The translations under genes were made by a program, and so were the position numbers. A stretch of 64,000 nucleotides of DNA from the NCBI GenBank assembly GCA_047495785.1, contig JBLDXI010000001.1:2356001-2420000 (forward strand), written 5' to 3'. Positions 15,727-60,480 of the stretch are shown piece after piece (within the stretch, counting starts at the first letter, position 1; each line of letters opens with the position of its first letter). Origin of the DNA: Lepidodermella squamata. Taxonomy: Eukaryota; Animalia; Gastrotricha. Below the pieces are notes generated by a model, which ran no database searches, was not told the origin of the DNA, and saw nothing but the letters and a program-made list of their open reading frames with translations.

Positions 15727-17882
15727 ATGGAGAAAACTGCTTGTTCGATTTTAGCATTGCTGATTGTACTAATACTCGGAAGCTCGGCGGATGAGATCAA
15801 TCCATGTGGGAAAGTTTCGGTACAGATTATTTTGATTTCTGGAAAAATAGAAAACCTCACCTTTGGATTGCCTTAATGTAGATTGCTAAGCTGAATTGCC
15901 GTCTGGCTGTTGCGATCGAACTCGGAGATAAGGAAGCTGTTAAGAATAGGAATTTTTGTCTCAACATATCGACAGATGATTTGGCAGATAAAATTCGGTT
16001 CAAGGCTGTCTACGAGCAGTGTCTCCCGAATATCACCAGCCTGCACCGCGCTGTTCTTCAGAACTCTTCAATTTCCGTAGTTAAGCCGCTGATCACAAAT
16101 CCTGAAGATGTTACTGCGGTTGAACCTTTGCTACGCCGGACGCCAGTGATGATCGCAATTCAACGCAACAATACCGAGGTGGCCAAATTACTCTTCGGCA
16201 TCATATTCGATCGAGCAATTTGTCATATTTCGACGGCGGTAAAGCGCTGAAAGAATCGGCTAAACTCAGAAACGTGGAGCTGTTGGAAATACTGCTGAAC
16301 AACGGCGTCGACGTAAATGCCAGGGATGAAGAAAACTTGACGGCTTTGGATATTTCGGCCGAAATAGGAGACATGCGAGGTGTGAAGCTGCTGCTCGATC
16401 GGAACGCTTCTATGGGACCTCCACGGGAATCTGCGCTTTTTGCAGCCATCGACAATAAGCATTTCGCGGTGGCAGATTTTCTGATTTCACGAGGTGCCAA
16501 ACTGCTGCCATGGTGGCTCGTCGCGGGTGTCCAGTTCAATATAAATATAGACTCGGTGCGATACCTCTTAGATCGTGGCGCATCGGTCAACTACAAAGGC
16601 TTTTTTGGCTTCACGGCTCTTGACATGGCGATTTTACAAAACTCAACCGAGATCGCTAAGCTTTTGCTCGCCAAAGGAGCAGATGTCAACGCAGTCAATC
16701 CATATTTCCCCAGCGAAACCCCGTTACGCAATGCATGGCGCAATGATAGAACCGGAATTGTTAAACTTTTACTTGAAAATGGAGCTAATGCGACGGAATT
16801 TGCGATCCTATCGATGCCTGCTACAACAACAACGACTGTTCCTAGAACAACAATTCATCCTAATGTAACCTTTTTATATTCTTCAGTTCCTAATACCTGT
16901 ATTTCCATTTTTCAACCAGATGCAGAAGTTCCTGGACTACGCAGTTAATGGAAGCATCGCCGACGTGAAAGAAATGCTAGCCACTGGCGAAATAAACACT
17001 AGGGATGGCCTCAAATTCGTCATCGAGCTCAATGCCTCAAGTGATGTAGTTCGGCATCTAATCTCTAGGCTTGGTCGAGTTAACATAACCGATGCTGAGC
17101 TTCTTATGGCTGTACATAACGGCAACTTGGCAGTCGTTGAAACTTTATTCGAAGCCGGGGCTAATGCAAGCTATCCATCTGCACTCTGGTCGGCGGTGTT
17201 TCGAAATAATTTTGCTATGACTGAGCTTATTTTGAGTCAGCAATCGTTCCGCAGTACGCCCCTCTATGAAATCAACAAATCCCATACAATGGCAGACGTA
17301 GAGTCTGCAGCAATTTTCGAACTGCTTCTTAACAAAACAGATCTGATCGTGAATTTCACTACTGTTGACACGCCCTTGATTTCTGCGGCAAGATTTGGAC
17401 AAATGCAGGCTTTGCGGTTGCTGCTGAAGCGTGGCGCGAACTTGACAGACGTCGGTCTATGTGGACACTCGGCATTGACAGCTGCTGCGAGGAACGGCCA
17501 CTTGGAGGCGGCTGAAGAGCTCATAAAAGCTGGCAGTGATGTCAACTGGAGAATGGCTGATGGCGAAATTGCTCTCCACTACGCTGCGTTCAACGGCAGG
17601 GTCGAAATGGCGAAACTTCTGCTCGACCACGGCGCCGATGTTGAGGCTCGCGACCGAATAGGTCGAACTCCTTTCGCATGGGCATCAATGCTTGGCAAAC
17701 ATGAAATGGCTGAATTTCTTCGTTCCAGAGGGGCCCAGTTGGTTGAAGGGCTCGAAGAGCAAAACGTTTCTGTGTCCGACTTTGCCTGGAGTTACAAAAA
17801 TAAAGAAGTCTCCAAAAATTACGGAGTGGTCTTTTCGTCGGGAAAGCTGAAGAAGAAAACCTGCCTGGCGATGATCCATTGA
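15727..17882 (+). pseudogene. Signal-peptide ankyrin-repeat protein, tandem paralog A; frameshifted at ~16204
   Basis: Exon 1 (15727-15819) encodes the signal peptide MEKTACSILALLIVLILGSSA. Exons 15882-16864 and 16920-17882 encode ANK repeats with a Thr-rich linker. Relative to paralog B there is a 2-nt insertion (atcATattcga vs atcattcga), giving a stop at 16248-16250. It could be a pseudogene, a null allele or an assembly error. Confidence 0.75.
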
Positions 17883-18820
17883 ATTTTCGATTGTTTTTTT
17901 TTTGCTGCTTACACCCCGATTTTTTGTTAAGCTTTTAATTAATTTGCCTTTACTTTGCAATGGTTTAACTAAATCGATGTTTTAAATAAATAAAATTGTT
18001 TTTCCCCTTCACTGGCTATCTTTGGAAAGTGATGTTTTCAATCAGAGTACGTAGAGAGTTGAATAGTTCTAGGAGTCTCAGATAACAATCTTCTGACTGC
18101 TGAGCCTGTAAACGCCGACATATCGTTAGCAACATATCGGCACCATAACTCCGCTGAATAACTCCGATTTACGGTTGTTTATGTCAGTTTGAAGGTGACA
18201 AATCTTGTTTTGCCTCTTTAAAAACGTTAAAAAAGCCGCTTTTCACTTGCCACGGATGTAAACAAGCCTAATTCGATACTAACGAGTCTTATTGATATGG
18301 TTCATGATTCAGCATCAAAGTGGTTGGAAAATTAATAAAAAAATATAGGATTGCCCATTCCCGATGATTTCTTTCCATAAATAGCTACAATATTAAAAAA
18401 AAACCCGATGGTTCCAGACTGCAGACGGTCCTCTGAAAAAATGAACACGATTGTTATTTTTTATTTTAGATTAATGACAGCCTTGATTGATAACGGTTCT
18501 ACACTATCAACTGACACAGATTCAGGTGAAGACAGCGAAACCATGCTACATATTTCGATTAAACCGAGAGTGATGTTGAACTTGACCCTTGATTTTCATG
18601 CGACCGAAGCAGTAGCCTAGGAATTTTCAAGAACTGGCTTATCAAGTTGTTACATCCCCACTCTGTGTAACATCTGTCTGACGAGGCTCATTTTGGGAAA
18701 TAACTTGGGATCGACATCTGCCTCATGTGTGACAGTTTTCCAGGTTAAGAGGCTAGTAGGGCGCAGGTATGAAGATTGTATTCCAGATAACTCTCTTTGT
18801 ATTCGCAAAGCCTAGTCAGA

Positions 18821-20933
18821 ATGAGGAAAACGGCGGTTATCCATATAGCTTGTTCAACCTTAGCTTTGTTGACTGCACTTAGCTTCGAGAGCACGGCAGA
18901 TTCCATTCAGACATGTGAAAACGCAACGGTAGATGATTTTGGATTGCCGGATATCTTCACTTAGATTTATTTCAAAACAGATTGCAGAGTTGAATTGCCG
19001 TCTGGCTGTTACGATCGATCTTGGTGATGAGGAAGCCTTTAAGAAGGAACAAAGCTGTCTCAACTTATCGAAAATCGAGTTGGCTGACAAAAACCGCTTC
19101 CAAGCCACCTACGAGCAATGTCTACCGAAGATTACAAGCCTGCACCGCGCTGTTCTTCAGAACTCTTCAATTACCGTAATAGAGTCGCTGATCGGCAACT
19201 CGGCAGGTGTGGATTCGATCGAGCCTTTGATACGTCGAACGCCTCTGGAAATCGCAATTCAACGCAACAATACCGAGGTGGCCAAATTACTCTTCGACAT
19301 CATTCGATCGAGCAATTTGTCAAATTTCCACGGCGGTAAAGCGCTGAAAGAATCAGCCAAAGTCTGCAACGTCGAACTGTTGGAAATGCTGTTGAACAAC
19401 GGCGTCGACGTGAATGCCACGGACGAAGCAAACTTGACGGCTTTGGTTTTTTCGGCTGAAAAGGGAGACTTGCGAGCTGTGAAGTTGATCCTCGATCGGA
19501 ATGCTTCCATCGAAAGACAGGCGCTTAAAGCAGCGATATCGAATCAGCATTTCGATGCGGCGGATTTTCTTATTGGACGAGGTGCCAAGCTGCTGCCATG
19601 GTGGCTCCCTTTTTTCGCCGACTCGAATCTTACCGAATCGGTGCGATACCTCTTAGATCACGGCGTCTCTGTCAATCACAAAACAACCCTCGACTTTACA
19701 GCTCTTCACATGGCTGCTTGGCACGGCTTTGTTGAACTCATTCAACTGTTACTGGCAAGAGGGGCGAATGTCAATGCAGTGACTTATTTCGGATCAACCC
19801 CGTTATACAGTGCATGGCTTAACGGTAAAACGGATGCTATGAAAATTTTACTTGAAAATGGAGCTAATGCGACGGAATTTGCGATCCTTTCGATGCCTAC
19901 CACCACTACAACGGCTGCTCCCAGTACTACACTCCATCCTAATGTGACCTTATTCCTTATCATCTACTTCATCTACTTCATTTCCTGTATTTTCATTTTC
20001 AAACAGATGCAGAGGTTCTTGGACTATGCCGTCAATGGAAGCATTGCTGGCGTGGAGGAAATGCTGGACAATGGCGAAATCCATCCTAGTGATGCTCTCT
20101 TCTCCGCCATCCAGTTCAACGCCACCGGCAATGTAGTTAGGTATATACTCTCCACCAGACATGGTCAAGTTCACATAAGCGCCACTTCTCTTCTTTATCC
20201 TGTGAAAAACGGCAACTTGGCAGTCGTTGAGGCTCTATTCGAAGCTGGGGCCGATGCGAGTTACCCATCAGTACTTTGGTCGGCAGTATTTCGAAATGAT
20301 TTCGCTATGGCTCGGCTAATTTTGAGTCAGCCATCGTTTCGTATAACGCCCCTCCATGAAATCGACAAAGTCGTTACAATGGCAGCCATAAAGGGTGGAG
20401 CTGTATTTGAACTGCTTCTTAACAAAACTGGTAATCTGAACTTGAATTTAACCTCTGGTGACACGATATTGGTTTCTGCGGCAAGATTTGGACGAATGGA
20501 GGCTTTGCGGTTGTTGCTGAAGCGAGGCGCCAACTTGACTGAGGTCGGTCTATGTGGACACTCAGCACTGACAGCTGCTGCGAGGAACGGTCACTTGGAA
20601 GCGGCTGAGGAGCTCATAAAAGCTGGAAGTGATGTCAACTGGAGAATGGATGATGGCGAAACTGCTCTGCACTACGCTGCGTTTAACGGCACAGTCGAAA
20701 TTGCCAAACTGTTGCTTGATCACGGCGCCGATGTTGAAGCACGCGATTGCACTGGTCGAACTCCTCTCGCATGGGCATCAATGCTTGGCAAATATGAAAT
20801 GGCTGAATTTCTTCGTTCCAGAGGGGCTCGATTTCTTGATGGGTATAATTCAGGGCGAACCATGTCTGTGTTCGAATTCGCGGCGAGCTATGAACATTCG
20901 AAGATGTTTACCTGCCTGAAACTCTTCTACTGA
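18821..20933 (+). CDS. Secreted ankyrin-repeat protein, tandem paralog B (intact)
   Basis: Exon 1 (18821-18928) reads MRKTAVIHIACSTLALLTALSFESTA (signal-like). Exons 18981-19943 and 20007-20933 encode more than 12 ANK repeats (e.g. GETALHYAAFNGTVEIAKLLLDHGADVEARD) with a central TTTTTAAPSTT linker and many N-x-S/T sequons. Confidence 0.85.
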
Positions 20934-21695: not shown

Positions 21696-24600
21696 TCACC
21701 ATAGATAGCACTTCTCCCTGCGATTCATCGTCGTCACGCTGCCACATTTGAACGCTCGAGCGAAATCGTCAGAATTCGCCAGCGTTCCAACAACTCTAAC
21801 AGCCGAAGGCGAATGAGCCGACATGTACACCTGATTCCGCAGCGCCTCTTTCGTCAGCAACGTGCAATAAGTCTGAGCGAATGACAAATAGAACAATTGG
21901 TCTGAATTAAGGTCCAGACCAGGCAGTTTCGCATCGACGCCGCCGATTTGACCTAGCTTTTGAGCAGTTTTATACGCGAGGAACGCAGATCTCAACCCGC
22001 TGCTATCCGCAAGATTTTCGCCCAAAGTTTGCCGGCCGTCAATGCGGTTCGAGTCGATAGTATAGGAATTGTACTGCTTAACAAAGCATTGAGTGTGATT
22101 TCTAAAAGTTGTGTACGTAATCGGCGACCACCAGTTTTTGATATTTCCAGCGCCGTCGAAAGCTTGACCCCTATCATCGAACGCATGAGTGATTTCATGG
22201 CCGGCCATGACGCCTAAAGATCCGTAACTCAACGCCTCAGGTAGGCCTTTCGTCAGGTAGAAAAATGGTTCATGCAATAGAGCAGCCGCGACAAAAATCG
22301 TGTTCTGGGTAACTTCGTATAGGCCATTAACGGTTTGGGGCGTTAACGACCATCGATTCACGTCAGGTTTCTGGCGGTAAGACCGTAGCGTGACTCGGAT
22401 TGAGTGGTTGTAGAAGTTGAATAAATTAGCCGTGTGGTCGGTGTTGGTGATTGTGAAGTTGATGTAATTTTCGTCGACGTAACTGCTGTTTCGGAGCCAG
22501 TCCGGGTACGCGACATCCATAGCGAGGTCGTCGAGTTTACCTAGGGCATTCGTTCGCGTCCAACCGTCCATCCATACGGCGTTTGAGATCAGTTGGCGAT
22601 AAGAGGATTTGACGTTGTTGACTAATTCAAGTGCCTAAATCGAAAAAAATCGGAAACAAGAGTATTAAAAAAATAGGAATTCAGTGAGGCAAAACCTCAA
22701 TTCCTAAAATTTGAACGACAAATTTCGAAAAAAAATTAATTCCGAAAATTTCAAAAATTAATAATTTCATATTTAAAAATCTCAAATTTCAAATTTTCAT
22801 AACTTCAAAATTCAAAAATTTCGAAAATTTAATTATTGAAAAAATCAAAACTAAGCAATAAGGCGAATCTTAACTTTTATATTTGCCTTTTATCGAATCC
22901 AAAATATTCAGATGGATCTCAAAAAAATTAAATAAAAATCGAGCGTTATTCATGGGAGAATGAATTCCGGAAATTTTCAAGTTAAAAAGCTCTTAGCTTA
23001 CCTTTTGCTTTTGATTATCAGGAGAGAACCGATCCAAGTACATTTTGCCGAGAGCAACTCCCAACTTTTGATTAGTATCACCCAAGCAATCCAGCCACGG
23101 CTCAGGCTGGCCACGATTGCCGCTGTAAACCGTCAGAAATTTAGTATAAGCCGTCTTGAAGTCGCTACCCATCCGCGGGGCATAAGTCGAAACAGCCAGT
23201 AGTACAATATAGTTCTGCAGGGTTTTCACGCCAGCCGGGGTCGCAAGGTACGAGTCGAGGAGGGATGCCAAACTCTTGAAGTACGGAAAATCGAGGACAA
23301 TAACATTTTCCTCCAGCGAAAAATCGACGTTCAACCCAATGCCGGTGTAGAGGTTTGTCAAGAAGCGGTCCCATTTGATGTAACTAGCATTGCCGTACAG
23401 GTATTTCAACGGCATTTCTCGGTACAAATACGTCACGCTTCGCCGGTCAATTTGCGAAGAATGAATCGCGGCTAATTTTTGCTCGAGTAACACAACGTCT
23501 TGAATCGCTTTTGTATCAACATTTTTTGACCCAGTTATCGACTGGACAAAGGTTGTTAGCTTTTGAATATAAGCCACCATAACCGGGTCTTGAGTCAACG
23601 ATTTGTTGAGGTAGAAATCTCGGGTGTTCAAACCGAGACCCAATCGGCCCCGGTCCAGGAATAAAACATTCCGCGACGTGTTGTAGTAGTCAGGCGTGAC
23701 TCCGATCAAGAAAATGCCGTTCATTGTATAGCGGCTTCGTTTGATAACCGCGTCCTCGAACGAAAATTTCGTCGTGTCAAAGGTTGAATTTTCAAACGCG
23801 AAACCGCCCAGCTCGTCGACCATCTGCCGTAGTCGCGTCACGCCTCGCAGCTCCGTCGTCACGGTGTTTAAACACGCCTGGTAATAGGCGCGAACTTTTT
23901 TAATCACCGGGTCGTCGGTGGTTAGCGGCTTTTCAATGACAGTTTTGAGTTGTTTCATGATGACAGCTTCGCGTTTTGTAAATTGTGTCGTCATTTTTTT
24001 GCCGACGGGGATTTCTTCGAGTTGCGCAAAACCGCCGCATGCGTAGTCGTAGAAATTCACGCATGGATCAGCTGTGACGTTCATTGAGGCGATAATGCGA
24101 CCAGCGGTTCGGATACACTCCGTACTAGTACATAACGATGATTTCCTCGCTAAATAAAAATTTTAAATAATTAGTTTAATAACAAAAAAACTCCTCCTTA
24201 ATAAAATTTTCCCGTGAAATTTTCAATTTTTCAGCCATTTAAAAAAAATCTAATTTTTTTAGTTAAATTAAAAAATCTGAATCTAAATTTTTTTAAATAT
24301 TATATAATTGTTTCCCTTGACCCGGACAACTTGGAAATAAATTAAAATTATGAAAATTGGTATTTCAGAAAATTAAGAAAAAAGTACAATTTTTAGCTTA
24401 AAAATTAAAAAATGACCAAAACTCACCATTTGTTTTAGAAGCGATACTGAGAGATATCGATAGCATTAAAATGGTGAGTAATAGAATAAGGATAGGTGTG
24501 ATGTATACGACAGCTTTCAGCCATTGCTGCTTGTGGTCCCACCATTGCCGGGTCGTGTAATAAGCGTACCATAACCGGCTAAATTTACTAGTTTTGTAGG

Positions 24601-24724
24601 TCAAATCCGGCTCGGAAACGTTGAAATTTGTATCGAGACCAGCGGTTGTTGTTGTTCCCGGTGGATTTCGGGCATTACCACTCCCTACAAAGCTGGTACC
24701 AAGTGGGTACTGGTCACCTACCAT
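21696..24724 (-). CDS. Neprilysin/endothelin-converting-enzyme-like metallopeptidase (M13), type II membrane protein
   Basis: Exons 24724-24427 (cytoplasmic tail plus TM), 24149-~23001 and ~22634-21696. Motifs CxxxxC..DPCVNFYDYACG, VNGLY, HEITH zinc motif, GENLAD, HSP..RV and terminal CYLW. Confidence 0.93.
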
Positions 24725-25738: not shown

Positions 25739-28700
25739 TTAAGGTGGGCAAAGTGCAGAAAATGACGCGGTGCAGCCTTCGCCAGTTGCGCCCTTACTCG
25801 TCAGCAATTTAACGATATCAGACTTGCCATCATGAGCCGCGTACATCATGGCAGTCCAGTTATCCTGATTGCGCCGGTTAAGCTCCGCCCCTCCAGCAAT
25901 CAACCGCTCAACCACGCCAATACTACTGTAACGAGCCGCGTACATTAAAGCGGTCCAGCCAGACTGGTCAAATTCGCCCGGATCAGCGCCTTGATCCAGT
26001 AAGTAGTCGATAATTTCCAATTTATCATTCCTCGCCGCTTCAAGTAAAGCAGTCTCGCCGAATTTATCCGTCATATTTAGAACAGCCCCGTTTTCAACCA
26101 GGTATTTGACAATATCCAAGTGGCCATTCGCCGATGCGAAAAGAAGAGGAGTTTGGCTGTAGAGGCTTTCAATGGCGTTGATTTCAGCGCCTTTATCAAT
26201 AAGGATCTTGACGACCTCAAAACGGGCCTCGGGCGTTCCCGTGCATTGAGTCACCCTGTGTAGCAGCGTCCCATTTTCATTCGAATACCGGCAGGTATGG
26301 CGAGACTGGTCGCGCCAGTTCGGGTCGAAATGTCCGCCCGTTTCTAGGTCGATTTGACTGATCAAGTTTTTAACAACGTCGATTTTTACGAAATTCCCAC
26401 AGGCTACGCTGAGTTCTTGGTATAGTTGCAGGGTGGCTGGTAGCATTTCGCAGTAGCCAAGGTCCGGGATCCATCTGCCATTTGCGTGGCATTTAGCTTG
26501 AAGACTACCGACTCCCTGGAATCCGCGGGTACACATTAGGGTGACAAAAGAGCCAGCAATCACCCGTTCACCCTGGGTGACATCTCTGACGTAGGTTTCG
26601 TCACGAACTGAATGGAAGCCTCTATCTACAACGCAGGGTGCTAATAAAAATGATAATTAAATTTTAATTTTAATGAAATGAATTTTAATTACCCAATTCG
26701 CAAGCCTGGGGCTTTGTCCATGTCCCATTGTTCAAACACCTTATGCTGTTATCGTTAACCGATAGATATCCGTCCAAGCAGACAACTTCCCGTTCCGTTC
26801 CACTTGCGTTGCTTCCACGCTTGATATAACCATTTTCAACTGCTGGCAAGATTCCACACTCGATTTTGGCGCATGGAGCTGGTTCGGACCAGGTTCGAGT
26901 TGGTAGGCAGGTGATGGATTCAGTTGTCGTTCGATAGCCGGCGTAACATTCGACACGCCTGACTGCTCCGAAATTGAACGAACTTCCAGGCTCAATCCAT
27001 CCATTTTCAATTATTGGAACCTCGCCGCAAGCTAAACAAATTTTAAACCAAATTTGATTAAGGTGGATTTTCGAACCTTTGCCAAGTGTGGACCCTAAAT
27101 TTAGGGTTCCGGATCTAACTTTGAGGCTCCATAACTAATTTCCCCAAATGTAATTTAGTGCTGTAACCTCAATTCTGGTTTAAATTATTGAACCTTTTTA
27201 ATTTATACCTTGACAAGATCCAGAAACTTCCCAAGTTCCAGAATGTAAGCAAATAACAGTTGCAGATCCAATTAGTGAATAGCCATCATCGCAGACAATT
27301 AAGCCAACAGTTTCGACCCGGCCAAGGATGATGACGCCATTTACAATTTTCGGAGGAACTTCGCATTGACCTCGGCATTTTCCAGGTTCGCTCCAACTTC
27401 CATTTGGCTGGCAGAGAATCGAATCTGAGCCGATCAGTTCGAAACCAGGTTCACAGCTAACCATCCTGACCGATCCAGCTTTACTAGTTCCATCGGATAT
27501 GGTCCCATTCGTAATCTCAGGCAAATTGATACAATCTGGGAAAAAAATCGAGCGAAATTGAAGGAAAACGTTAAATTATCTGTTTACCTGGCAAACATTG
27601 CCCCGATAATTGCCAATAGCCGTCTGACATGCAATGAACCTCGCCAGTTCCAGTTAACGAAAAGCCACTTAGGCACTCAACTAATCCAACAGATCCTATT
27701 GTCTTCTGAACGATAGTAACTCGACCGTTCTCAATTGTAGGCGGATCGTCGCAAGCTGTGAGGAAATAATTGAAATTAATTAATTCCTATAAAATTTGAA
27801 ATTTACCTGGTAAGCAGAACCCGGATACAACCCATTTGCCAGAATTTGAGCAGATAACTTTACCGGATCCGAGTAATGAGTAGCCATTTTCACAAGATAG
27901 CTGGCTGGTGGTACCAACGCAGCGTGAAGTGACGTTAAAGCCTCCTCCGGGAATTATCGGCAACTCGATTGGACAAGCGACGGCTGAAAGAAGATTTAAA
28001 AATAATTAAAAAAATAATTAATAGATTAAATTAATTTTGTTAATTTTGTTAATTTATTCATGCCTTTGCTTTCTGCAGTAAGATAAGTTCCAATCGTGTT
28101 GTCGCACTCATCGACCTGAATCGGCGAGCATAGGCCACTTTGTACCATCAAATTGACCAAATAAACGCGTCGTCTCATCGCAGCTCGATGAAGCGGGGTC
28201 AGCCCGTCCTTGTCCAGCATTGAACAATTTGCTTGATATTTCTCCAACAAAAGGGCCACCAAACTCGCCGAACCCGTTTCTACGGCTAGAGATAACGGCG
28301 ATAGGCCATCGAAATCCAACTGAGAAAGAGTCTGCGATAATTCGCCGCTATATTTGCCGAATTTTGATAAAATCAAATCGACAACGCCATGCGTTGATTC
28401 GTCCATGCCAATAGCGATATGTAAAGCGCTGTAGCCGTACGAGTCACCCTGAGACGCGGCGCTTGGGTCAGCCGAGGCAACTAGGTCAATGACGGTCATA
28501 TCGCGGGAAATTACGGCTAAGTGCAAGGCGTTTTGACCTTCGCGATTGGGTAACGCGACATTGCAGTGACGGGCGAGAAATCGGATCATTTCCAACGAAG
28601 CATTGTGACGAATTGCCAGGGATAACGCCGAGTCCCCAGTGCTTGGATGAGTTTCATTCAGCGATCTACCCTAAAACATATATAATTTTGATTTTTTAAT

Positions 28701-30421
28701 TTTTAATAATAATTAATTAAATTTAATAACTAATTTTATTAATTTAATTATTTTTAATTTTAAAATTTGAAGAAGAATTTACTGCGTTTTTTCAATTTTA
28801 CCTGTTTATCGGCCTTTATCAGTGCTTTGGTCATATTGAAATTTCGTTTCTCAATCGAATATAGCAAAGCTGTTAGACCGTCTTTATCTCGTTGGGTTAG
28901 GTAGAGCCATTTCGAAAATTGCCGAATAAATTCGACATAATTCGTCCGAACAGCTAAATGCGCCAATCCGAGACCTTTTTCATTCGCCAGTTCAGTATCG
29001 GCCTTTTCAACTTCAATCAAATGCCGAACTAAATCGATTGATTTGCGGCGGGAAATTGCCAGCATCAACGGGGTCATCAACCCATCCTCGCCATCTGTCG
29101 AATTCCCAGCAACTGAAAACGACCTTACATCAATGCCGTCTTGAAATTGAAATTTTATATCAGCAGCGAGAAAATGCAGCATTTTCACGTCATTAGCTAA
29201 ATGAAGAGCGGTATAGCCGTGGATATCTCGAGCTAGTCGATTAGCAGTGAACTCTCGAAACATAAAATCAGCCGAAGAAACCGAGCCTGAAATAACGGCC
29301 CTTAAGAACGGAGTAATCCCCTGGCTATCGCGCGATTCGACAAGATTTCGATCTTTCCTTATCAACCAATGCGCGATTCGTTTCGCCGACATTGAAAATT
29401 CGAACAAAACGCGTAATGACGATGAATCGAGCGAAAATACGTCATCAACTGTATCATTCATCGAAACCAGGGCGTGTAGGGCTGTTTCGTTATTCGAATC
29501 CAAAATCGAGACATTCACGCCAAATTTAATCAAATTTTCCGCAATTTTTTCGTGCCGAAATTTCGCAGCTAAATGAAGCGGTGTCCCTCGCTTATCAGAC
29601 TCGTTGTTGTACAAACAAATCGGGTCCTCGAAAATTGACGGGTCAACCTTCTTCTCGAAAATTTTCACTAGAAATTCGGCGCTGTTATTCCGGATAGCGT
29701 AGCAAATCGGCGTCTCGTTATTCGCGTCGTAAGTCGTGAAATTGAAAAGTGTCCAGAATGAGTCTAAAAACTGGGTCATCCCCGATTCTGCCACTAAATG
29801 CGATACCGTTTTATTAGCCTCGCAGCAACGGGATTCGATCAGTTCGTAATGATCATCGCTTCGACTCAGCAAAAATTTGACGAGATCGAAATTGCGGTGG
29901 ATGATCGCCTCGTGAATCGGCAGTCGATTTGCCGATTTCTCGCGATGACTCATCAAAGCGCCGAATTCGTCAACTAACAGCGATGCGATTTGCCGCGTTT
30001 TGCCACTCGGAGCTTTTGCCAGGTAGAAAAGCGGCGTTTTGCGAGCGTTATTCAACGCATTAGCCAACTCGGGATTTTCAGTTAAACTCGATTTAACGAT
30101 ATCAAAATTCCCGGATTGACACGCTAGGTGGATAGGTAACTCCCCGAGAAAGTTGAACGTTTTTACCGATCCGCCGTTTAATTTGAGAAATTTGAACGAT
30201 TCACTGGCGTTGAAAAGTGCCGCGATATGTAGCGGGGTGTTTCCGGTTTGATTATCGCGAATTTCCCGCGCTGAACTGTTGAAAAATTCTGATAGTACGC
30301 GAGTAATAATGTCAACGTCGTCATGCTTGATCGCCTCGAATAGCGAATCCCTTCCCAAGGATTCTAGATCAAAACTTCGAACTGAGGATATGATAATAGC
30401 AATCAAACTAAGAATTTTCAT
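25739..30421 (-). CDS. Secreted ankyrin-repeat / Sushi (CCP) mosaic protein: SP - ANK array - 7x Sushi - ANK array
   Basis: Signal MKILSLIAIIISSVRS. ANK exons 30421-28802 and 28670-28064. Phase-1 Sushi exons 27983-27807 (1 domain), 27755-~27588 (1), ~27535-27208 (2), ~27032-26691 (2) and ~26641-25739 (1 Sushi plus ~6 ANK). Each Sushi matches C-(x)-P-x-I-x-NG...C..G(F/Y)....C...G.W....C. No TM segment seen. Confidence 0.8.
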
Positions 30422-31372: not shown

Positions 31373-34300
31373 ATGCATCTGCTAAGCTATCGCCGGGTTT
31401 TACTGCAAGCGCGGCATTTTTTCGGTTTACGTTATCTCAAAAAATTGGCTATATTAACGCTAACTTCAACCAGGCGCTGCCTTTTCGACACTATTTACTG
31501 CCGAACGACTCGGAGACAAAAGTTTCTTATCTTCTTCCTATTGGTTAGTGATTTCGAGATTTTTTGAAATTTTTCGAATTTTTCGAATTTTAGATTGTCC
31601 TTCTAATATGGTACGATCAACCTGAAGATGAAGATGGAAATTTTTACAAGCCCGTGGCAGGTATAAAAATAAAAAAATAAAAACTATTTTTTATAGATAA
31701 ACATTTTATTTTTCATTATTTTTAATATTTTTATATTTTTTATAGAATCCACAATTTGCCACTCGGCAAAATGTATCGTCGAAGCGAGTCAAGCTTCGCT
31801 GAACTTGAAAATCGATCCATGTTCAGATTTTTACGAATTTTCTTGCGGGCAATTCCGCGGCCGAGTCGAGCACGTGACTGACGTTGTCGGGATTTCAAAA
31901 CATCGAATTCGCCACATTTTAGAGCAAAATTCCACCGATTTTCAATCCGATTCGATTGAAAAAGCACGAATCTATTACAACTCATGCATGACCGCTGACA
32001 TCAACCGAGTTGGTGCAATCGAAATTTTGAGGATAGTTACCAATCTCGGCGGTTTTGCCGTGGCTAGTAACAGCTATTTACCTGGTTATTCTGCCTTCGA
32101 GAAAAATTTGCTGCTATTTTGGTCGAATTATTCTTCGAATGCGTTCTTCAAATTTCAAATCGGCCGGGATGAGTTGAACCCGACAACCAATGTCGTTCAA
32201 CTGGTACCACCCGACCTCGGCCTGGGACCTGGAACTCAAAATATTTACCTGACGAATAATTCAATAATTCACGACCGAATTTTAACGGCTTACGCGTGGA
32301 AATTGGAGCAATTCTCGCAATTTGTCATGCTAATTCCTAACGATGGGTCGATTCAAGCGGGTAGGACTAACGCAAAGGCGCCGATGACCAGGCGCGATAT
32401 AATCGATGTCATTGATTTCGAGCGAAAACTCGCCGAATTCATGCCGAAGCAAATCTATAAAACAGTTGTAAATAACACGTGGTTCGAAAAGAAAATCGAG
32501 GGTATGACCAACATAAAATGGCGGTCGCTATTCGAAAAGCTATTCATCGATTTAACTCGCCAAGCTTTAAAGCCTCAGACCGAAATTTATTACCTCCACG
32601 TGTATTCCGAGTCTTTCTTCAACAATTTGTTTACGCTGATGAGTGAAATGGTGCGGACGGATCGCGGCCGGCGAGCTTTGCATAATTATTTAGTCTTCCA
32701 GGCGTTGAACGCCCATGCGGCTAAATTTAATCATTTCTTCCTTAACGCCGAGGTCGAGTTGCAGAAACACGTTTTTGGCAAGACTGTTGTGCATCCACGA
32801 TGGCGCCGATGTATCGAAGAAACTGAGACAGCCTTTGGACTAGCCATCGGATCGGCATATATTGCAAAATACATCCCATCCGAGGCTAAAGCTGAGGTGA
32901 AATCTTTTTAATTACGATTTAATTTAATTTAATTTTTTAATTATGATTCATTTCCAGGCACGAAAAATTATCGATGCTGTAAAAACCGCCTACAAGGCCA
33001 AAATTAAAGCGGTCGATTGGATAGATGATGAAACGAAGCGAGGCGTGATAGAAAAGCTCGATTTGCTGGCGATTTCTATCGGTTTCAGCGATAAAATGTT
33101 GGAAAAGCCGGCTGTTGAAGCTTATTATAAAGATCTGCAAATGTACCGTGGCAATTATTTCGCTAATCGAATTTCCATTCATTATTTTACGACTCAACAA
33201 AACCTTTTCGTAAGTCAACATTTCTATTACTTCGGCAACTAGTAGGAAATTCAACCGATTTTATTAAATTCAATCTACCGAGAGAATATTACATCTTTTA
33301 TCCGCGATTTCACCGAAGAAATAACAAATTTACAGGAGAAAACTCGGGAAACCCCGATGGTAACTGGTTCGGTAATTTTCGGTATTTTTACCCGGTTGGA
33401 CCAAATTTCTCCGGACTTTCTTATGCCCATTAATAGGTGATATGCTTGATTACTATTTTCGTGATTTTTTGTAATTATCTAAAAAACCTCTGGCCATTAG
33501 ATGTGACTTCGTCTCTCATTTTAGAGTTCCTAAATCTTTTTCCGTGAGTTTTCTTTGCTTGCGTTACCTATGGGACACATTATGATTTTTCGAGTTTTAC
33601 CTTGGTATCTCAGTTTTGAAGTTGAAGCCTAAACAACAAATCTCACTGTAAAAACGCGTATTTTGCGCTATCAGCGGTCAGTTACACTTTGCTGAACCGA
33701 TATCGATTTCCGGTATCGATTTTACAGATAAGTGATTTTTTCGATATCGGTAGTCGAAGAGGCAGCATTAAAGGGATTTACGTAAATGAGGGTAACAGTT
33801 AGCTCTAATAATGAAAAATCCAAATCCCATGGTTATATTAAGGTGCATAATGAAAGGAAAAAGTCAAAATCTCAAAAAATTCGCGAAAAATTAAGCGCTC
33901 TTTATTTAAAAAATTCAATTTTAGCTAAAAATAACCGAGATTTTGAAAATTTTACATCGACCTAAAATTATATTTTGTTATAATACTTTTTTGCAGTTAT
34001 TAAATACGGCTCCGGTCCCGCCAATTCGACCTCTCTTGTCTCCCCTGGCCAATAACGCCTACTACGAACCCATAGAAAACCACCTCGCAATTTTAGCCGG
34101 CCTCCTCGCTCCTCCCACATTCTTCCACTCGTCAAGCCATGTACCAATCGCAATGAACTACGGCGCTTTAGGCTCGCTAGCTGGCCACGAGATGACGCAT
34201 GCGTTCGACTCACGAGGCGGCGGCTTCGACAGCACAGGCCATTTACGGCCATGGTGGAGAAACGAAACAAAGGCGCGGTTTCAACATCGCGGTAAATGCT

Positions 34301-42486: not shown

Positions 42487-42700
42487 AAAATTGCTCCGGA
42501 ATTTTGATAAATGTTTACCTAATAATTATAAATAAGTGTTTAAATTATTAAGATCCTGCAAATACTGCCACCTAATTTTACGCCGTAAATGTGTTTTTTG
42601 TTCGATTTTTCTATGAATAAAATAAAACCTAATCGGCTCGCGATATAGTTGTAAAAAAAATTATATTTTCTTTCACAAAAATTCAGATATTTTTTTGAAA

Positions 42701-49232: not shown

Positions 49233-51050
49233 ATGCCAAGGGCTCCAGAACCCGCACCGCCAAAAGGCGGAAAACCGCCACCCCCTGCGCAGCCATCGAA
49301 GGGTGATCCAAAGTCGAAACAAGCCGCCCCACCCCCTCAGCAGCAGCACGTTTCTCGGAAGGCTCAGCACAACCAGGAAGCGCCGCCTCCACCGCCTGGT
49401 AACCGCAAAAACTCGGTCGAAAAGGTGAAAACCTACGTGGTTGACTCGCCGAAGCAGTTGGTGGCATCTAAAAACGCCAATCAGCCCGAGCCGCTGCCAC
49501 CGGGTCGAAAAAGTCCGAAGCCCAAACCGAGACAGGATAAGCAGGAGGTCTTCGCGCGGACCCACCATGCTCCGGATCAACCAGTCCGGGCATCCGGGGA
49601 GAAACCGAAACCAGGCAAGCCGGGTCAGAAAATTTCCTTCGGTGGCTGGAATGAGTTCATCTCGGACGAAGTCGATAGGCTACAGGGTAAATCGAATAAA
49701 CCGGCCGGGAAGGGCCGTTCGGAGCCGCAACCACCGCCGCCACCAGCTTTGAAACCGAGTAAACCCGGCCAGGGTGACCAGGCGAAGAAATCTGGGAAAT
49801 ACACGACTACGGTGGTTTACGAAGTTGTCGACGATTATGACGACCCGAGACGGTATAAAAAGAAGCCCGAGGCCAAACCGGCGAATGGTAAGCTCCCACC
49901 TGTTGCTACGAAAAACCAGCCGGTCCCTAACAAGGCGGCGCCTGGGCCCTCTCGGAACAGGATCACGACTATCCCCGAGGAGCCGCCGACCCCCCGTCAA
50001 AGCAAGCCGGGAAAAATCTCGGAGCAGCCGCAAAAATCAGGTAAATCGATCGAACAACCCCGACATGAACCTCCGGGTGTCAAAATGGGTGCTGCTCATA
50101 ATCGGAAGCTGTCATTCCCGAGCCCGGTCGATCCCGTTGGGAAACATCGAATTTCGCTGATACCTGAAGAGCCTGACTGGGTTCATCAAGCTGCAGCGCG
50201 GTCGAATAGTAAACCCAACGCTCCTCCTCCACCACCACCACCTGCTCATAGGAAGGGTGACCCGCCTCAAACGTCTTCTAAGCAACCACCGCCGAGTAAT
50301 AAACAAATCACAGCGCAACAACTCCCGCAACGGAAAGGTGATCCATCACCTGGCCGAGGGCCCCAGGGTGCTCCGGGTGCTGCTGGATCTAAAGGTTCGA
50401 GTAGTAAGCCAAACGCACCCCAGAGGAAGGAAGACCCATCACCCGGAAGAGGATCCCAGGGTGCTCCCGGGGCGAAGGGTCCTAAGCCAGATCCAAAGCA
50501 GCAAAATCAGCCTGGAAGACCTCAAAAACAGGAAAATGCGCAATCTCGGCAAGCTCCGCCGGCTGGAAAACAGAACCAAACTGGCGCCAGGGCCCCGCCG
50601 GAGCCTCCATCAAAGGGGAAACCTCAACAGCAGCAACAGAAGGGGCAAACTCAAACTCAGAAACCAAATCCGCCGGCTGGAAAGGCGCGGCAATCTAATT
50701 CGAATGTAACCCCTCGAGAATCTGTTGATCGTAAAAAGCCTCAGCCACCCTCGAAGAGTGCCCCGAAAAAGGGTGTCTCCCTATCAACGGGTGACCTCCC
50801 GCGAACTGTCGCGAAATCAACAGGTAAAACTGCTGGCAAAACCAAGGAGCCTCCTGTTGAGGTCGAAGAGGTGCCTGACCTTCAACATCGGCCGAGCTTC
50901 AAGAGCAAATATCACGCGAATTTCAAGCGGTTTCCTATACTGGCGGAGCAAACTGATACGGAGAAGCGGAGAGGATCCTTCGCCTACTACCGAGGTGGTG
51001 TCGTTCTGGCGCGGGGGATCCACGCCGCACTTCGAGGGGGAAATTTTTGA
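49233..51050 (+). CDS. Pro/Lys/Gln/Gly-rich intrinsically disordered protein (605 aa), unknown function
   Basis: Uninterrupted 1.8-kb GC-rich ORF between AT-rich flanks, with poly-Pro runs and an internal repeat PQRK(G/E)DPSPGRG(P/S)QGAPGA. AATAAA at ~51143. Confidence 0.7.
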   Translation: MPRAPEPAPPKGGKPPPPAQPSKGDPKSKQAAPPPQQQHVSRKAQHNQEAPPPPPGNRKNSVEKVKTYVVDSPKQLVASKNANQPEPLPPGRKSPKPKPRQDKQEVFARTHHAPDQPVRASGEKPKPGKPGQKISFGGWNEFISDEVDRLQGKSNKPAGKGRSEPQPPPPPALKPSKPGQGDQAKKSGKYTTTVVYEVVDDYDDPRRYKKKPEAKPANGKLPPVATKNQPVPNKAAPGPSRNRITTIPEEPPTPRQSKPGKISEQPQKSGKSIEQPRHEPPGVKMGAAHNRKLSFPSPVDPVGKHRISLIPEEPDWVHQAAARSNSKPNAPPPPPPPAHRKGDPPQTSSKQPPPSNKQITAQQLPQRKGDPSPGRGPQGAPGAAGSKGSSSKPNAPQRKEDPSPGRGSQGAPGAKGPKPDPKQQNQPGRPQKQENAQSRQAPPAGKQNQTGARAPPEPPSKGKPQQQQQKGQTQTQKPNPPAGKARQSNSNVTPRESVDRKKPQPPSKSAPKKGVSLSTGDLPRTVAKSTGKTAGKTKEPPVEVEEVPDLQHRPSFKSKYHANFKRFPILAEQTDTEKRRGSFAYYRGGVVLARGIHAALRGGNF

Positions 51051-51228
51051 AATATTATCAATTATTATTTGTTATTTTTTGTGCGACAAATTTGTATTTT
51101 TATGATCGCCTAGCGCAGAGATTTTTAGCTCGAAATGCTTTCAATAAAAAATGAAAAATAATTAAATATCTTGTCCACCCGAATTGAGCAAAAATAGTTA
51201 ATTGCTCCATATTTATTTAAAAAAATTA

Positions 51229-54229: not shown

Positions 54230-54560
54230 ATTGCCAAGTTTCATGGGGAAGGCCGCGAGCTTCAACATCGGTACTGTGATCGAGCAGCATTTTTTCGATT
54301 TCGGTCATCGCAGCGTAGTGCAGAGCAGTCTCTGCCAGCCACTCTCCAGTTGACATCACTGCCAGCATTTTTGATGAGCTCTTTTGTTACTTCCAAGTGG
54401 ACCTTTCTCGCAACGCAGCTGTCATTGCCGAATGTCCACATCGACCAAGCCAAGTTGGTGTCTCGCTTCAGCAACAAGCTCCAAGCCTGCCTTCTTTCAA
54501 ATCTTGAACCGGAGTCTGAACCGGTGCTGAACACATCTTGTTCGCTTATTGGAAACGATT
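54230..54560 (-). pseudogene. Decayed fragment of the secreted ankyrin family (paralog A/B type)
   Basis: Translation LLLKRDTNL..HLEVTKELIKNAGSDVNWRVAG matches LLLKRGANL..HLEAAEELIKAGSDVNWRMADG of paralogs A/B, with frameshifts. Confidence 0.75.
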
Positions 54561-55077: not shown

Positions 55078-55316
55078 GTGATTCATCTCACATCTAGAAT
55101 CTAGATCAGTGAATATGCTGATAAAATTCCCATGGCACATGAAATCTTAGCCGCGAGGTGCTTCAGTCGAAATTTATGTAACAAGTGGGCATGACTTTCG
55201 GGTCAAGCCCCAAACACTGTGAAAGCCACTGTGAAAAACAGGACGTCAAGGTTCGGTGAAATATCCGATTTGTTAGGAGGTTCTCACGAGCCTCACCGCG
55301 ACATTAGTCGCTAATC
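55078..55316 (+). repeat. Dispersed repeat family A (copies at ~41680-41797 +, 55078-55316 +, ~57110-57345 -, ~58925-59123 -)
   Basis: Shared gggcatg(a/g)ctttcggg..cccc and ggagg..cgagc(c/t)tcaccgcg...cgctaat. One end is gattcatct; a short hairpin gcgac-atta-gtcgc lies near the other end. Confidence 0.75.
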
Positions 55317-56289: not shown

Positions 56290-59200
56290 ATGATGGTAAT
56301 ACTCGAGAGTTTATTGCTTTGTTTAATCGTTGTACCGGCGTCTTATGCCGCAAATGCGGCTAAAACGCAAGAACTTTTCAACGCTATCAATGCCGGAAAT
56401 TTGGCCCAGGTCACATCGGCTATAGCCGGCGGGGCCGACATTAACGGGCGAGATACGCGTCCGAGTTCAAACGGTGCCACGCCGTTGATAACTGCGACAA
56501 AAAAGCAGAACATTGCCATCGTGCAGTTGCTGCTCAAAAGCACCGGAATCAACTTGTCAGAGGGCGACGACTACGGCAATACAGCTCTTCATTTGGCTGT
56601 TACAACCGGATCAGTTGAAATCGTAAAATTGCTGCTCCAAGGTTAGTGGACTGAATTACCAAGTATAGACCGAAATATTCCCTCTCCGCGAATTTTCGGA
56701 ATTTCAAGAAATTGTATAAAAATGATTTTGTGAGAACCAAAAATTTCTTGAAAAATTGGCTAAAATTTCGGTTTTTTTGAATATTTTCTAGAACACACAT
56801 TTACTCCTTTCTTTTGACTGGCGGTTTGAGAACTAATTTTATTACAATTTCTTTTTACCCATCTCGGTCTCAACTCTATAATTTTCTCAGACTCAAGAAT
56901 AAGTTATCAATCTATTTTTGCTGAAATTTACGATAGTTTTTAATCTGAATTACATACGAAATCCCAAAAGATTCGGAACAACTGATTGTTCGGATCGACG
57001 AATTGCTTGCATATTTTTTATTAAACCGTTTAACCGTTCAGTTTAACCCTCTGATTTCTTCAAAGCAGCGTCTGCTGATTTCTTGAATCGGAAATTTTAT
57101 TTCTAAATCATTAGCGACTTGCGTCGCAGTGAGGCTGGTTAAAGCCCCCGGACATCCGGATATTTTACCGGACCTTTGCGGCTTAGTTTCACAGTGGCTT
57201 TCACTTTGTCAGTGGGTCTGGGGCACGGCCCGAAAGCCATGCCCAAATGTCAAGTTTTCAAGTTGAAACCACCTCGCAGGAAAAAACGCATCTATCCCTG
57301 AAATCTTATTTACATATGCACATTTTATAAGCGAGATGAATCATCAATCCACCTAAAAAAACTGAGAAAATAAATGATTTTATTTGCAAATTATTCAATT
57401 TTTTTAAATTTGTTTTTGCAGGTGACTCGGATCCTAATTCTCAGAATAAGGCAAGCCAAACTCCACTCATCACCTGTCTCGCATCCACAGTCGCCTGTCC
57501 AGGTGACATCATAGTCGCCCTTTTAAATCGATCCGCCTCCCTCGACCTGGCCGATCGGCAGGGCAACACAGCCCTGGAACTGGCGAAAAACACCGAAATC
57601 ATCCCAGTCTACCTCTCAGTCCTCGCCGGTTGTATCGTTACAACAAATGATGACTGCGTCAACGCTCTGTTGGCTCCACCTCAATTAATCAGGCTCGGAA
57701 TCGATATGATGAGCCGACCAGTCGCTGGATTCGCCCGGGATGACGACACGTTGCTATCAGTCGCCGTCAGAACAGGCCAAAGACAAGTTGTCGAGCAGTT
57801 GCTAGACGCAGGGGCTGACCCTGATAGACCGCCTTATATCCTTACATTAGCAGCTCAAAGTGGGGAAATAGCCCTAGTTCGACTTCTAATGGGCTACGGC
57901 GTTGCTTTGAATTCGAAAAGCCCGCAGGATTGCAACATGACGGCAGTTATGGCTTGCGCGTTGTCCGACAAGGTCGTCAATCTATGCACCCTGGAAATTT
58001 TCGACTATTTAATTCGGCAAAAGGCGTCCCTTAGCGGGGTTGATTGCTTCGGCCGCGGGGTTGACGCCATCGCAAAATCGAATAAGAACGACCGGTCGTT
58101 TTCGGATAGAATCGAGAGTGAGTTCAGTGGGCTGGCGGTTGCGGTGGGCTCGACTCAGGCGCCGCAGCGGGTTCAAACGAATGCTATTGGCCGGGAGATC
58201 ACGGTGTGGCCGTGTGGTTATGACAAGAAGGAATTGATTACGACGACGACAACGACTACAACGCAGCAGCCGACGACGAGAAGAGCCGGGCAGAGGGGGC
58301 AAAGGCCGTCGTTCACGCAGATGCAAACGACCAGGGGGACGGAAGCTTGGTTTCCGTGGATGGTAAATTTTTTAAATTCAGAAATATTTAATATTAAGGG
58401 AACAATTTAAAATCGATTACTTAGTTGTATTGTTTAATTCTCTCCCATAATTTGTTGAATTATTACAATAATGTACGACAATTTGACTTTGAAACAGGGG
58501 CGATCCAGACCCTCCGAAGCATTTCTCATAGTTTGCCGAAGAATCCGAACCATTTATCCAATTAGGAACTTTTTGCGAACAATTTTTGCTAGCTTAAGAG
58601 ACCATTTACCGCTAATCGTGATTCTATCGAAGAAATTACAAATTTACCGGAGGAAGCTCGGAAAACCCGATGGTAACAGGTAATTTACCCGGTTGAACCG
58701 GATTTCTCAGGATTTTTCCTCTTAAAACAGTAAAAAAAACTAGTTGATTATCGTTTCAAGTTTGGAAATTTTGGACATGACCTCTTCACACCCGAATCAA
58801 CGCCGAAGCTCATAAACGAAATCGGCATATGCCGTAGTTGCACCTCTTTGTCGGCACTTAGATGTTCTTTGTAGTGCCAGGCTTGTATTTCGGCTACTAC
58901 GGTAATTTGTTCATTTCATGATTATAGCGACTAATGTCGCGGTGAGGCTCGTTAGATCCTCCTGACAAATCGGATATTTCACCGATCCTTGTGGTTGGGG
59001 CTTTACCCGAAGGTCATGCCCGATTGTGAAATATATTCCCAATGAAGCGCCTCGCGGCTAAGATTTCATGTGTCATAGAAATTTTATTAGCATATTCACT
59101 TCTCTATAAATAAGATGAATCACACAAAAAAATCACAGAACAAATATAATAATGAATAATAAATAAATATATTTAATTAATTACGATTAGTTAATTTAAA

Positions 59201-60480
59201 TTCTTATCAGCAAAAAATTGGGGGGTGTTGTGGGATACTTCTACATGACATTAAACGAAGATTAAGCGGGATTGGGGTCGGAATTTTGACGGAAGCCTGT
59301 TAGGATTTTACTTTATATTTTGTTGCTTTTTTCGATGGGACTTTGTTTTATTTTGCAATACATTTTTCAGGCTCGTTTGAGGCTGAGCAGCGCTGGGAAG
59401 TCGGCCGAGTACTGCGGTGCGAGTATAATCTCCGCTAATTGGCTGCTCACAGCCGCTCACTGCGTCCGTAATAAGCTGAACGTCGACATTCAGATGGGCA
59501 ACCACAACTTTTCACAAATCGAAGACGGCCAGGCCGACCCGCAACCGGCACAGAACGTCGTCATCCACCCATCGTACAACCCAGATACGCAAGACTACGA
59601 CTTCGCCCTGTTACAGCTAAATGTCCCATTCTATCGATTTACCGCGAAAATGCAGCCGATTTGCTTGCCTGACCACCCGTTTAAAATGTGTGACTCATCG
59701 GTTGATACCAGCGATGATACAATGAGCATGGTTGACCAGTGTGACCAGGTCGAGGCGGCTGGTTGGGGCCTGAATGAGTTCAGCCAGAAGACACCGGCGC
59801 TGCAAAAGGTCACGTTGAATGTGAAGCCCTACGGTGAATGCGCGACGAAAATTGTTGGAGAAAACGACGAAAATGCAGAGCCTCTGAGACTCAGTGATGT
59901 TCACATATGCGCGGGCAGTGATGATGGCCAGGACACTTGCCAAGGTGACAGGTATGGACTAGACAATTATTTTAAAAAATTTCAATATTTTTCAATTTCA
60001 ATTTTTTTCATACTTATATTGAAATTCTATCCATTATTTGAAGAATCATTTAGAAATTTAGATTTAGAATTTAGAAATCATTTAGAAATATAATTTTTTC
60101 AAATTTTTGTAATATTTTGATTTTTCATAAGTACGTAACCACTTTAAATGTTTCAATTTTTAATTTCGAAAACTCTAAATCAATTTTCTTCAATTTTTAT
60201 TTATTTACTTTCTAACAGTGGCGGCCCTTTGATGTGTAAGAAAGATGGCCGATGGTATGCTATTGGCATCGTCAGTTTTGGTCGGCAAGATTGCGGAGAA
60301 AAAGGAGTGCCTGGTAAATATTAGCATTAAATTTCAAAAAATCTCGAAATTATTCTGCGAATTTTTATAGCTGTTTATTCGAGGGTTTGCAAAGTTGTCG
60401 ACTGGATAAAAAATGTCACGAAATTCGACTTTCTTGACGGAAATGCCAACGACAATGGCCGCATCAGATCATCGGGCTAA
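56290..60480 (+). CDS. Secreted ankyrin-repeat / trypsin-like serine protease fusion protein
   Basis: Exons 56290-56641, 57422-58362, 59371-59951, 60219-60313 and 60371-60480 are phase-compatible. Signal MMVILESLLLCLIVVPASYA, ANK repeats, then PCG..TTTTTTTT linker. Exon 2 ends GTEAWFPWM and continues ARLRL..CGASIISANWLLTAAHC, DYDFALLQL, QDTCQGDS|GGPL, GIVSFG..CG..GVPAVYSRV..WI. Confidence 0.85.

Follow-up and report, generated by a model that had tools for sequence, protein, structure and literature searches.

Ankyrin (ANK) repeats are taken to mark a protein as cytosolic or nuclear, and annotation pipelines, topology predictors and domain-combination statistics depend on that rule. Alpha-latrotoxin of spider venom is an exported protein with a long ANK array and with N-terminal and pore-forming parts of its own; it has no signal peptide, complement control protein (CCP, or Sushi) module or protease domain. 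The secreted ANK effectors of bacteria, oomycetes and plasmodiophorids are microbial proteins that act in the host cytosol and are not fused to CCP or S1 protease domains. Extracellular mosaics of CCP modules and an S1 protease are represented by MASP, C1r/C1s, factor B and Limulus factor C, none of which contains ANK repeats, and both CCP and S1 domains depend on disulfides formed in the endoplasmic reticulum. Recognition through the variable face of a solenoid-repeat protein is exemplified by the lamprey VLR, built on leucine-rich repeats (LRR), and by DARPins. Here we describe four genes, g1 to g4, in a 64,000-nucleotide window of the genome of the gastrotrich Lepidodermella squamata (contig JBLDXI010000001.1; G000:C1:2356001-2420000), in which ANK repeats stand behind leader-like N-termini, either alone or in one chain with CCP modules (g3) or an S1 protease (g4).

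Apart from work on latrotoxin, full-text literature searches brought up no report of animal ANK proteins that are secreted or extracellular. The nearest precedent is RON9 of Toxoplasma gondii, a single-copy protein with a signal peptide, six ANK repeats, one Sushi domain, PEST repeats and a C-terminal transmembrane (TM) segment, which has been located experimentally in the rhoptry neck, a secretory organelle (PMC3299665). ANK repeats and a Sushi domain behind a signal peptide can thus exist in a secretory organelle (PMC3299665). Based on the architecture of the genes and of their paralogs, we propose that g2, g3, g4 and, until a recent frameshift, g1 probably encode soluble proteins of the secretory pathway, N-glycosylated and probably O-glycosylated, that reside outside the cell or in a secretory compartment and place ANK repeats alongside CCP or S1 domains. 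The same proposal holds that g1 to g4 probably belong to large lineage-specific families in which ANK repeats have been shuffled with CCP and protease modules.

Results

ANK genes of the window and their domain architecture

The host assembly comprises 121 Mb in 151 contigs. The window has a GC content of ~41%, and its introns are short (50-130 nt), AT-rich and of the GT-AG type. The models of g1 to g4 were assembled manually, guided by open frames and splice motifs, and their domains were checked with Pfam. An earlier note on this window had listed four separate ANK genes starting at 15727, 18821, 30421 and 56290; all four are present at these starts, and Pfam assigns every ANK exon to the Ank clan (Ank_2/Ank, 50-161 bits). 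The only other families that Pfam reports on g1 to g4 are Sushi and Trypsin.

The gene g3 lies on the minus strand and extends over seven exons from 30421 to 25739, encoding 1379 amino acids (aa) in the order leader, ANK, seven CCP, ANK. Exon 1 (28802..30421) contains the leader MKILSLIAIIISSVRS and an ANK array of ~520 aa in one open frame (Pfam ANK, 161 bits), with a stop codon eight codons upstream of the ATG. Exon 2 (28064..28670) adds further ANK repeats recognized by Pfam, ends at a GC donor in phase 1 and brings the N-terminal ANK part to ~740 aa over two exons. Exons 3-6 (27983-27807, 27755-27588, 27535-27209 and 27031-26693), with phase-1 introns, encode CCP 1-6; the last exon (25739..26640) encodes CCP 7, a cap in which the motif IDLETGGHFDPNWR occurs together with two conserved Cys, and ~5 ANK repeats (Pfam ANK, 119 bits). 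The seven CCP domains noted previously in one ANK gene are borne out, six of them by Sushi (PF00084) scores of 25-71 bits, above the cut-off of 20.7 bits, and the seventh as a sub-threshold match of 19.2 bits. The region contains 29 Cys and has the ~60-residue four-Cys modules of the Sushi/CCP family. None of the CCP exons has a start codon or leader of its own.

The gene g4, on the plus strand, has five exons from 56290 to 60480 and encodes 692 aa comprising a leader, ANK repeats, a Thr8 linker and an S1 protease. Its first exon (56290..56641) opens directly downstream of a stop codon and contains the leader MMVILESLLLCLIVVPASYA and the first ANK repeats in one frame, again with a Pfam ANK match. 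Exon 2 (57422..58362; Pfam ANK, 50 bits) runs from divergent ANK repeats through a Cys, the TTTTTTTT linker and basic stretches (TTRRAGQRGQR) to the start of the protease, GTEAWFPWM. The remainder of the protease is encoded by exons 3-5 (59371-59951, 60219-60313 and 60371-60480). The domain is an S1 peptidase (Trypsin, PF00089, 109 bits), as had been read before, with an intact triad of His57 (TAAHC), Asp102 (DFALL) and Ser195 (GDSGGP), and also has Asp189 and Cys122. Its best matches among solved structures are generic, namely kallikrein-8, factor VII and trypsin, at ~1e-15.

The genes g1 and g2 are tandem paralogs on the plus strand, identical at 86% of aligned DNA columns. They share a layout of a small leader exon, a four-Cys cap, ANK repeats and TTTTT linker, and a second ANK block. 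In g1, exon 1 (15727..15819) encodes the leader MEKTACSILALLIVLILGSSA followed by a Cys-containing start and can be aligned to g2 exon 1 once an in-frame indel of five codons is allowed for; exon 2 (15882..16867) encodes the Cys-containing cap, ANK repeats and Thr-rich linker (Pfam ANK on 16223-16900), and exon 3 (16920..17882) the second ANK block (Pfam ANK, 110-112 bits). The 665-aa product of g2 is encoded by exon 1 (18821..18928), which has a weak leader, MRKTAVIHIACSTLALLTALSFESTA, placed by the DNA reading and the gene model, by exon 2 (18981..19943), with the four-Cys cap, Pfam-supported ANK repeats and TTTTT linker, and by exon 3 (20007..20933), with the second ANK block (Pfam ANK, 150 bits). 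The g2 intron at 19944-20006 is in frame, and the DNA run X1 varies in length by 7 nt at 19948, which fits non-coding sequence. The two proteins are 69% identical, with a synonymous divergence (dS) of 0.53, a non-synonymous divergence (dN) of 0.20 and a ratio of the two (omega) of 0.37, and have 12 sequon columns and six mature-chain Cys in common. The genome holds no further close paralog of the pair, and a homolog search with g2 returned generic ANK proteins at no more than 28% identity and no close relative.

A fifth, decayed copy had been placed at ~54.3 kb. Decayed sequence of the g1/g2 family is indeed found there, but it amounts to a dead remnant of ~260 bp (54255..54513, minus strand), which tblastn recovers in two frames; it is 45-50% identical to the C-terminal ANK repeats at residues 514-603 of g1/g2 and is broken by a frameshift and an internal stop. 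In run X1, half-depth variant unitigs resembling heterozygous alleles cover g1 at 16855-17869. Upstream of g1, at 15088-15516 (plus strand), lies a small mucin-like open reading frame (ORF) with one TM segment, whose 3' end (STLSTDTDSGE...) is repeated upstream of g2 at 18408-18620 (plus strand). This repeat indicates that the tandem duplication unit, ~3.1 kb in length, took in part of the mucin-like neighbour.

Leaders, topology and glycosylation signals

Several junctions between modules sit within single exons, and the fusions are therefore independent of splice calls. The leader and ANK repeats share one open frame in g3 exon 1 and in g4 exon 1, CCP 7 and ANK repeats do so in the last exon of g3, and in g4 exon 2 the open frame joins ANK repeats, linker and protease start. 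The N-termini of all four genes have the n-h-c shape of a signal peptide. A crude signal-peptide rule is passed by g1, g3 and g4 and by 10 of 12 paralog leaders; among 40 ATG-initiated ORFs in the window six pass, g3 and g4 being two of them. A hydrophobicity scan of g1 to g4 detected no internal TM-like segment, the other peaks falling only within a CCP strand and ANK helices, and there is no KDEL or GPI-like (glycosylphosphatidylinositol) tail in any of the four. The earlier description of these proteins as lacking a constitutive TM segment therefore stands, and the hydrophobic signal peptide described on each gene corresponds to a putative one in g1, g3 and g4 and to a weak, borderline leader in g2. 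As no membrane span separates the modules, the ANK repeats must be in whichever compartment holds the CCP and S1 domains. We take g1 to g4 to be, very probably, ANK proteins of the secretory pathway, and hence extracellular, of a kind widely used in the lineage.

Potential N-glycosylation sites are abundant in three of the genes, as had been claimed. The count of N-x-S/T sequons against the mean of shuffled sequences is 18 versus 5.5 in g1, 16 versus 5.6 in g2 and 24 versus 10.2 in g3 (P<0.0005), that is, enrichments of 3.3-, 2.9- and 2.3-fold, each above all 120 generic ANK control proteins (maximum 2.24). The N-terminal ANK part of g3 by itself has 16 sequons against 6.0 expected. A hidden Markov model of the ANK register, covering 20-40% of the residues of g1 to g4, tentatively places the sequons preferentially at repeat positions 15 and 29; just one of them, at position 14, falls on the canonical binding face. 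Thr-rich linkers, described before as mucin-like, are seen in g1, g2 and g4.

Paralog families across the genome

Candidate counts from a first look at the whole genome were 1734 for Sushi and 1119-3374 for three ANK queries. The N-terminal array of g3 has ~48 matches at 26-42% identity. At ten sampled g3 paralog loci (~30% identical), seven have a canonical leader of their own in the same ORF, nine have ANK repeats followed by CCP modules on the same strand, and at four the sequence retrieved includes the full succession of ANK, CCP and short ANK. The short ANK module at the C-terminus of g3 has over 110 matches in the genome. Its cap (alignment A2) has the consensus EIDxxTGGxFDPNWR, two conserved Cys and a near-invariant N-x-T, and the module ends in a conserved terminal Cys.

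The protease gene g4 has one old paralog (L002), which is 29% identical in the ANK part and retains the layout of leader, ANK, linker and protease. The exon break after YPWM is the same as in g4, and in this paralog a continuous ORF runs across the position of the g4 exon 1/2 junction. Directly before its protease domain stands RRRGKR, followed by AGESNSYPDFYPWM; as a furin-type site, RRRGKR fits passage through the Golgi. The closest paralogs of the g4 protease in the genome adjoin CCP exons. At four further loci (L030-L033; G000:C4:1979000-1987000, C4:2040000-2048000, C4:1419500-1428500 and C73:339500-347500) a protease, ~3 CCP modules and a short ANK module follow one another on one strand, and the first of these genes, read by eye, has a leader and an intact triad. 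N-terminal placement of the protease is unusual for chymotrypsin-fold enzymes. Together with the layout of g4 and its old paralog, these genes indicate that ANK repeats and S1 domains have been joined in at least two different orders. Pfam assigned no Sushi domain to the tail of the ORF at locus L011 or to CCP 1 of the L030 ORF, though tblastn finds CCP-like sequence at both; fusions within one ORF are therefore not claimed for these two.

Searches for relatives beyond this genome gave generic ANK proteins only, or no match in the case of the cap motif. Two ESM Atlas look-ups were uninformative, yielding generic ANK clusters of which many are bacterial. A profile search with the short-module cap (A2) against 1.84 billion representatives was swamped by long ANK arrays; the three hits that cover the cap region are NACHT-ANK or ANK-only proteins of fungi. 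A word search confined to the cap gave no match within the length and word limits of the tool, which is a weak sign that the cap may be restricted to the lineage.

Do g1 to g4 then make up a system within the window, as the earlier note's candidate extracellular ANK-based system would suggest? Distances of 1-26 kb separate the genes, which lie on both strands; genes for M13 peptidase, kinase, ENPP, BTB, SLC13 and others intervene, and across the genome ANK and Sushi exons run into the thousands. On this evidence g1 to g4 are not a local cluster but members of genome-wide families, and a system confined to the window is not supported.

Weight of the evidence

A number of observations weigh against placing these ANK repeats in the secretory pathway. 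Splices and start codons of g1 to g4 are predicted from DNA, and their expression is presumed: a search for sequencing runs of the organism yielded no RNA run and a single DNA-like one (2024, X1). Signal peptides were judged by crude hydrophobicity and the (-3,-1) rule only, and the borderline g2 leader fails that rule. In g3, the boundary of intron 2 is GC-AG (AAAG|GCATGA, 28063-28064, minus strand), with no GT donor in the right phase. The frame of g1 is broken by a 2-bp insertion relative to g2 near 16205-16207, after which the old frame hits a stop at 16248, and run X1 contains no alternative allele at this point; g1 would nevertheless have been functional until recently, given the omega of 0.37 between g1 and g2. 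In g4 there is no sequon enrichment (5 against 5.1 expected, a ratio of 1.0), and its activation site, ...QMQTTRGTEAWFPWM, is not the R/K followed by I/V-V-G-G of a zymogen, which makes its activity uncertain. Finally, the ANK consensus residues T6 and N29/N31 may account for part of the sequon excess, which is for this reason supportive and not decisive.

The weak g2 leader, the GC donor, the broken g1 and the reliance on DNA-based models would all be expected if the annotation were an artefact, with leaders that are never used and ANK repeats that are cytosolic or belong to genes separate from the CCP and protease exons. Against this speak the several fusions within single open frames, the recurrence of layouts and leaders in paralogs at ~30% identity, and the CCP exons of g3 that have neither start codon nor leader, and we regard an artefact as highly improbable. 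The extracellular placement of the ANK repeats is, in our judgement, well supported by gene architecture.

Exported proteins need not act outside cells. The products of these genes might be effectors or toxins of saliva, venom or another gland whose ANK repeats work inside the cells of prey, hosts or competitors, in the manner of latrotoxin, bacterial ANK effectors or apicomplexan rhoptry proteins, and not binders outside the cell that serve the animal's own physiology or immunity. ANK repeats normally bind cytosolic targets, known exported ANK proteins are of such a kind (RON9, PMC3299665; latrotoxin), and the families are large, tandem and fast-evolving. Pfam detects no pore-forming or translocation domain in g1 to g4, however, and the high density of N-glycan sites, the CCP stalks and the tether of Cys122 type point to stable extracellular mosaics, so that an effector role appears unlikely.

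Variation on the ANK binding face

The earlier note had suggested that the ANK arrays serve as variable recognition modules, and the evidence divides between the families. In the g1/g2 pair omega is 0.31 at the ANK binding positions (2, 3, 5, 13, 14 and 33) and 0.32 in the framework, and there is no signal of diversification. In the short-module family, over twelve independent paralog pairs, dN is 0.57 at binding positions versus 0.16 in the framework, and amino acid differences reach 65-82% at positions 2, 3, 5, 10, 13 and 14 and 0-15% at core positions. Omega of this binding face is 1.44 with pooled dS (bootstrap 1.21-1.72) and 0.80 with the local dS of the same codons; the gap could arise from gene conversion of the framework or from multiple-hit bias. 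In the short module, then, variability gathers on the binding face; this falls short of proof of positive selection, and a recognition role for this family is plausible. The suggestion of variable modules is partly supported by the short ANK module and finds no signal in g1 and g2.

The same data bear on whether the ANK repeats recognize anything at all. They could instead be rigid spacers or self-assembly units of structural, matrix or secretory-granule proteins, as in cuticle, eggshell, adhesive or mucus, which would agree with the mucin-like Thr linkers, with uniform purifying selection in g1/g2 and the lack of a variable face there, and with the conserved terminal Cys of the short module, which could form intermolecular bridges. 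We find a purely structural role quite improbable, since change in the short module is concentrated at positions 2, 3, 5, 10, 13 and 14, the ANK binding face, and fusion to active-looking proteases is unusual in a purely structural protein.

A complement-like cascade had also been envisaged. Pfam, run on all exons of g4, finds ANK and Trypsin only and no CCP, CUB, EGF or vWA domain, so the gene does not have the architecture of a complement protease; with a generic S1 domain and a non-canonical activation site as well, the cascade is not borne out. Elsewhere in the genome there are ~12 genes with thioester domains (TEP/A2M/C3-like), for example at C13:714982, C13:721079 and C38:325927, with ~9 more. 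Given these, the animal may possibly have a humoral protease system, and nothing ties such a system to g1-g4. A bolder idea is a humoral recognition repertoire built on ANK repeats, with hundreds of exported, glycosylated modules that have a diversifying face and that CCP stalks connect with one another and with trypsin-like proteases. We hold this to be doubtful on present sequence data. If true, it would be a functional parallel to the LRR-based VLR and TLR or to lectin-MASP systems; to our knowledge no extracellular use of the ANK scaffold has been described in any animal.

Genomic setting

The neighbours of g1 to g4 are of animal type and include M13 neprilysins, a NEK-like kinase, ENPP, BTB proteins, an SLC13 transporter and a nuclear receptor. 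An HSC70 gene of this genome shares 75-79% identity with its counterparts in mites, flatworms, leeches, insects and chordates alike and has no close relative in the database, in keeping with a fast-evolving invertebrate. A horizontal origin of the ANK genes from bacteria was considered and rejected because of the GT-AG introns, the animal neighbours and the many diverged paralogs. Two divergent genes for M13 neprilysin-type metallopeptidases flank g3 (21696-24724, minus strand, and 31805-34707, plus strand), the former with a type II TM N-terminus at 24398-24724. Similar BTB-domain paralogs on opposite strands, 36 kb apart (5960-7134, minus, and 42695-43962, plus), bracket g1 to g3. Upstream of g1, an ORF at 10077-10442 (plus strand) has a leader, MCQLRQFVISIWLVSTLNLLLA, and a Thr-rich linker followed by K-VIGGIDV; it resembles the beginning of a further secreted S1 protease, one whose activation site is canonical. 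Two low-complexity ORFs were also seen on the plus strand. One, at 49233-51050, is an open frame of 605 aa, very rich in Pro, Lys and Gln, basic and free of Cys; the other, at 62864-63424, encodes 186 aa of repetitive sequence rich in Gly, Arg, Tyr and Ser, with units such as SASVNKNSASA and GRRGFFGRR.

Discussion

Based on these observations, we propose that this lineage recruited ANK repeats to bind proteins outside the cell and combined them with CCP and protease modules by shuffling. The ANK arrays would bind a partner, either a ligand or another member of the family. In g3, the CCP stalk would join a long ANK module to a short one. The ANK domain of g4 would serve as the non-catalytic chain, targeting or regulatory, of a trypsin-like protease; a furin-type convertase would probably separate this chain from the protease domain, with Cys122 possibly keeping the two tethered.

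What would such proteins mean for the view of ANK repeats? If the model is correct, a large animal gene family with signal peptides, glycan sites, conserved Cys and single-exon CCP or S1 fusions would overturn the cytosolic-ANK rule for one lineage and show the ANK fold to be adaptable to the oxidizing, glycosylating secretory route. The modules could then offer natural templates for extracellular ANK binders. Should the variable face of the short module reflect ligand-driven diversification, it would represent an independent invention of repeat-protein recognition coupled to proteases.

The proposed proteins share features with each of the known systems and coincide with none of them. Like VLRs and DARPins, the short module varies on one face of a repeat protein, and the positions randomized in DARPins coincide with its most variable positions 2, 3, 5, 13 and 14. 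Unlike them, it has no somatic assembly, position 33 is not variable and positive selection is not proven. With the microbial effectors g1 to g4 share ANK repeats behind an export signal, a putative one in g1 to g4, and they differ from these in their spliceosomal introns, animal neighbours and CCP and S1 fusions. Alpha-latrotoxin and g1 to g4 are alike as exported animal ANK arrays, export being predicted for g1 to g4; the leaders of g1 to g4 and a Pfam content of only ANK, Sushi and Trypsin set them apart from latrotoxins. CCP and S1 modules are used here as in complement and clotting proteases, and the closest protease paralogs of g4 adjoin CCP exons. In contrast to those proteases, g4 itself has no CCP, CUB, EGF or vWA domain, the CCP modules of g3 and the protease of g4 are in separate genes 26 kb apart, and in the protease-CCP-ANK paralogs the protease is N-terminal, the reverse of the complement-protease order. 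RON9 and g3 each unite a signal peptide or leader, ANK repeats and Sushi/CCP modules in one chain, a likeness drawn from architecture. The single Sushi domain and C-terminal TM segment of RON9 are replaced in g3 by seven CCP modules between two ANK blocks and by an end without a hydrophobic segment, so that g3 is not simply RON9-like. Whereas RON9 is a single-copy protist protein with PEST repeats, the genes described here belong to an animal, form multi-member families and include fusions to proteases.

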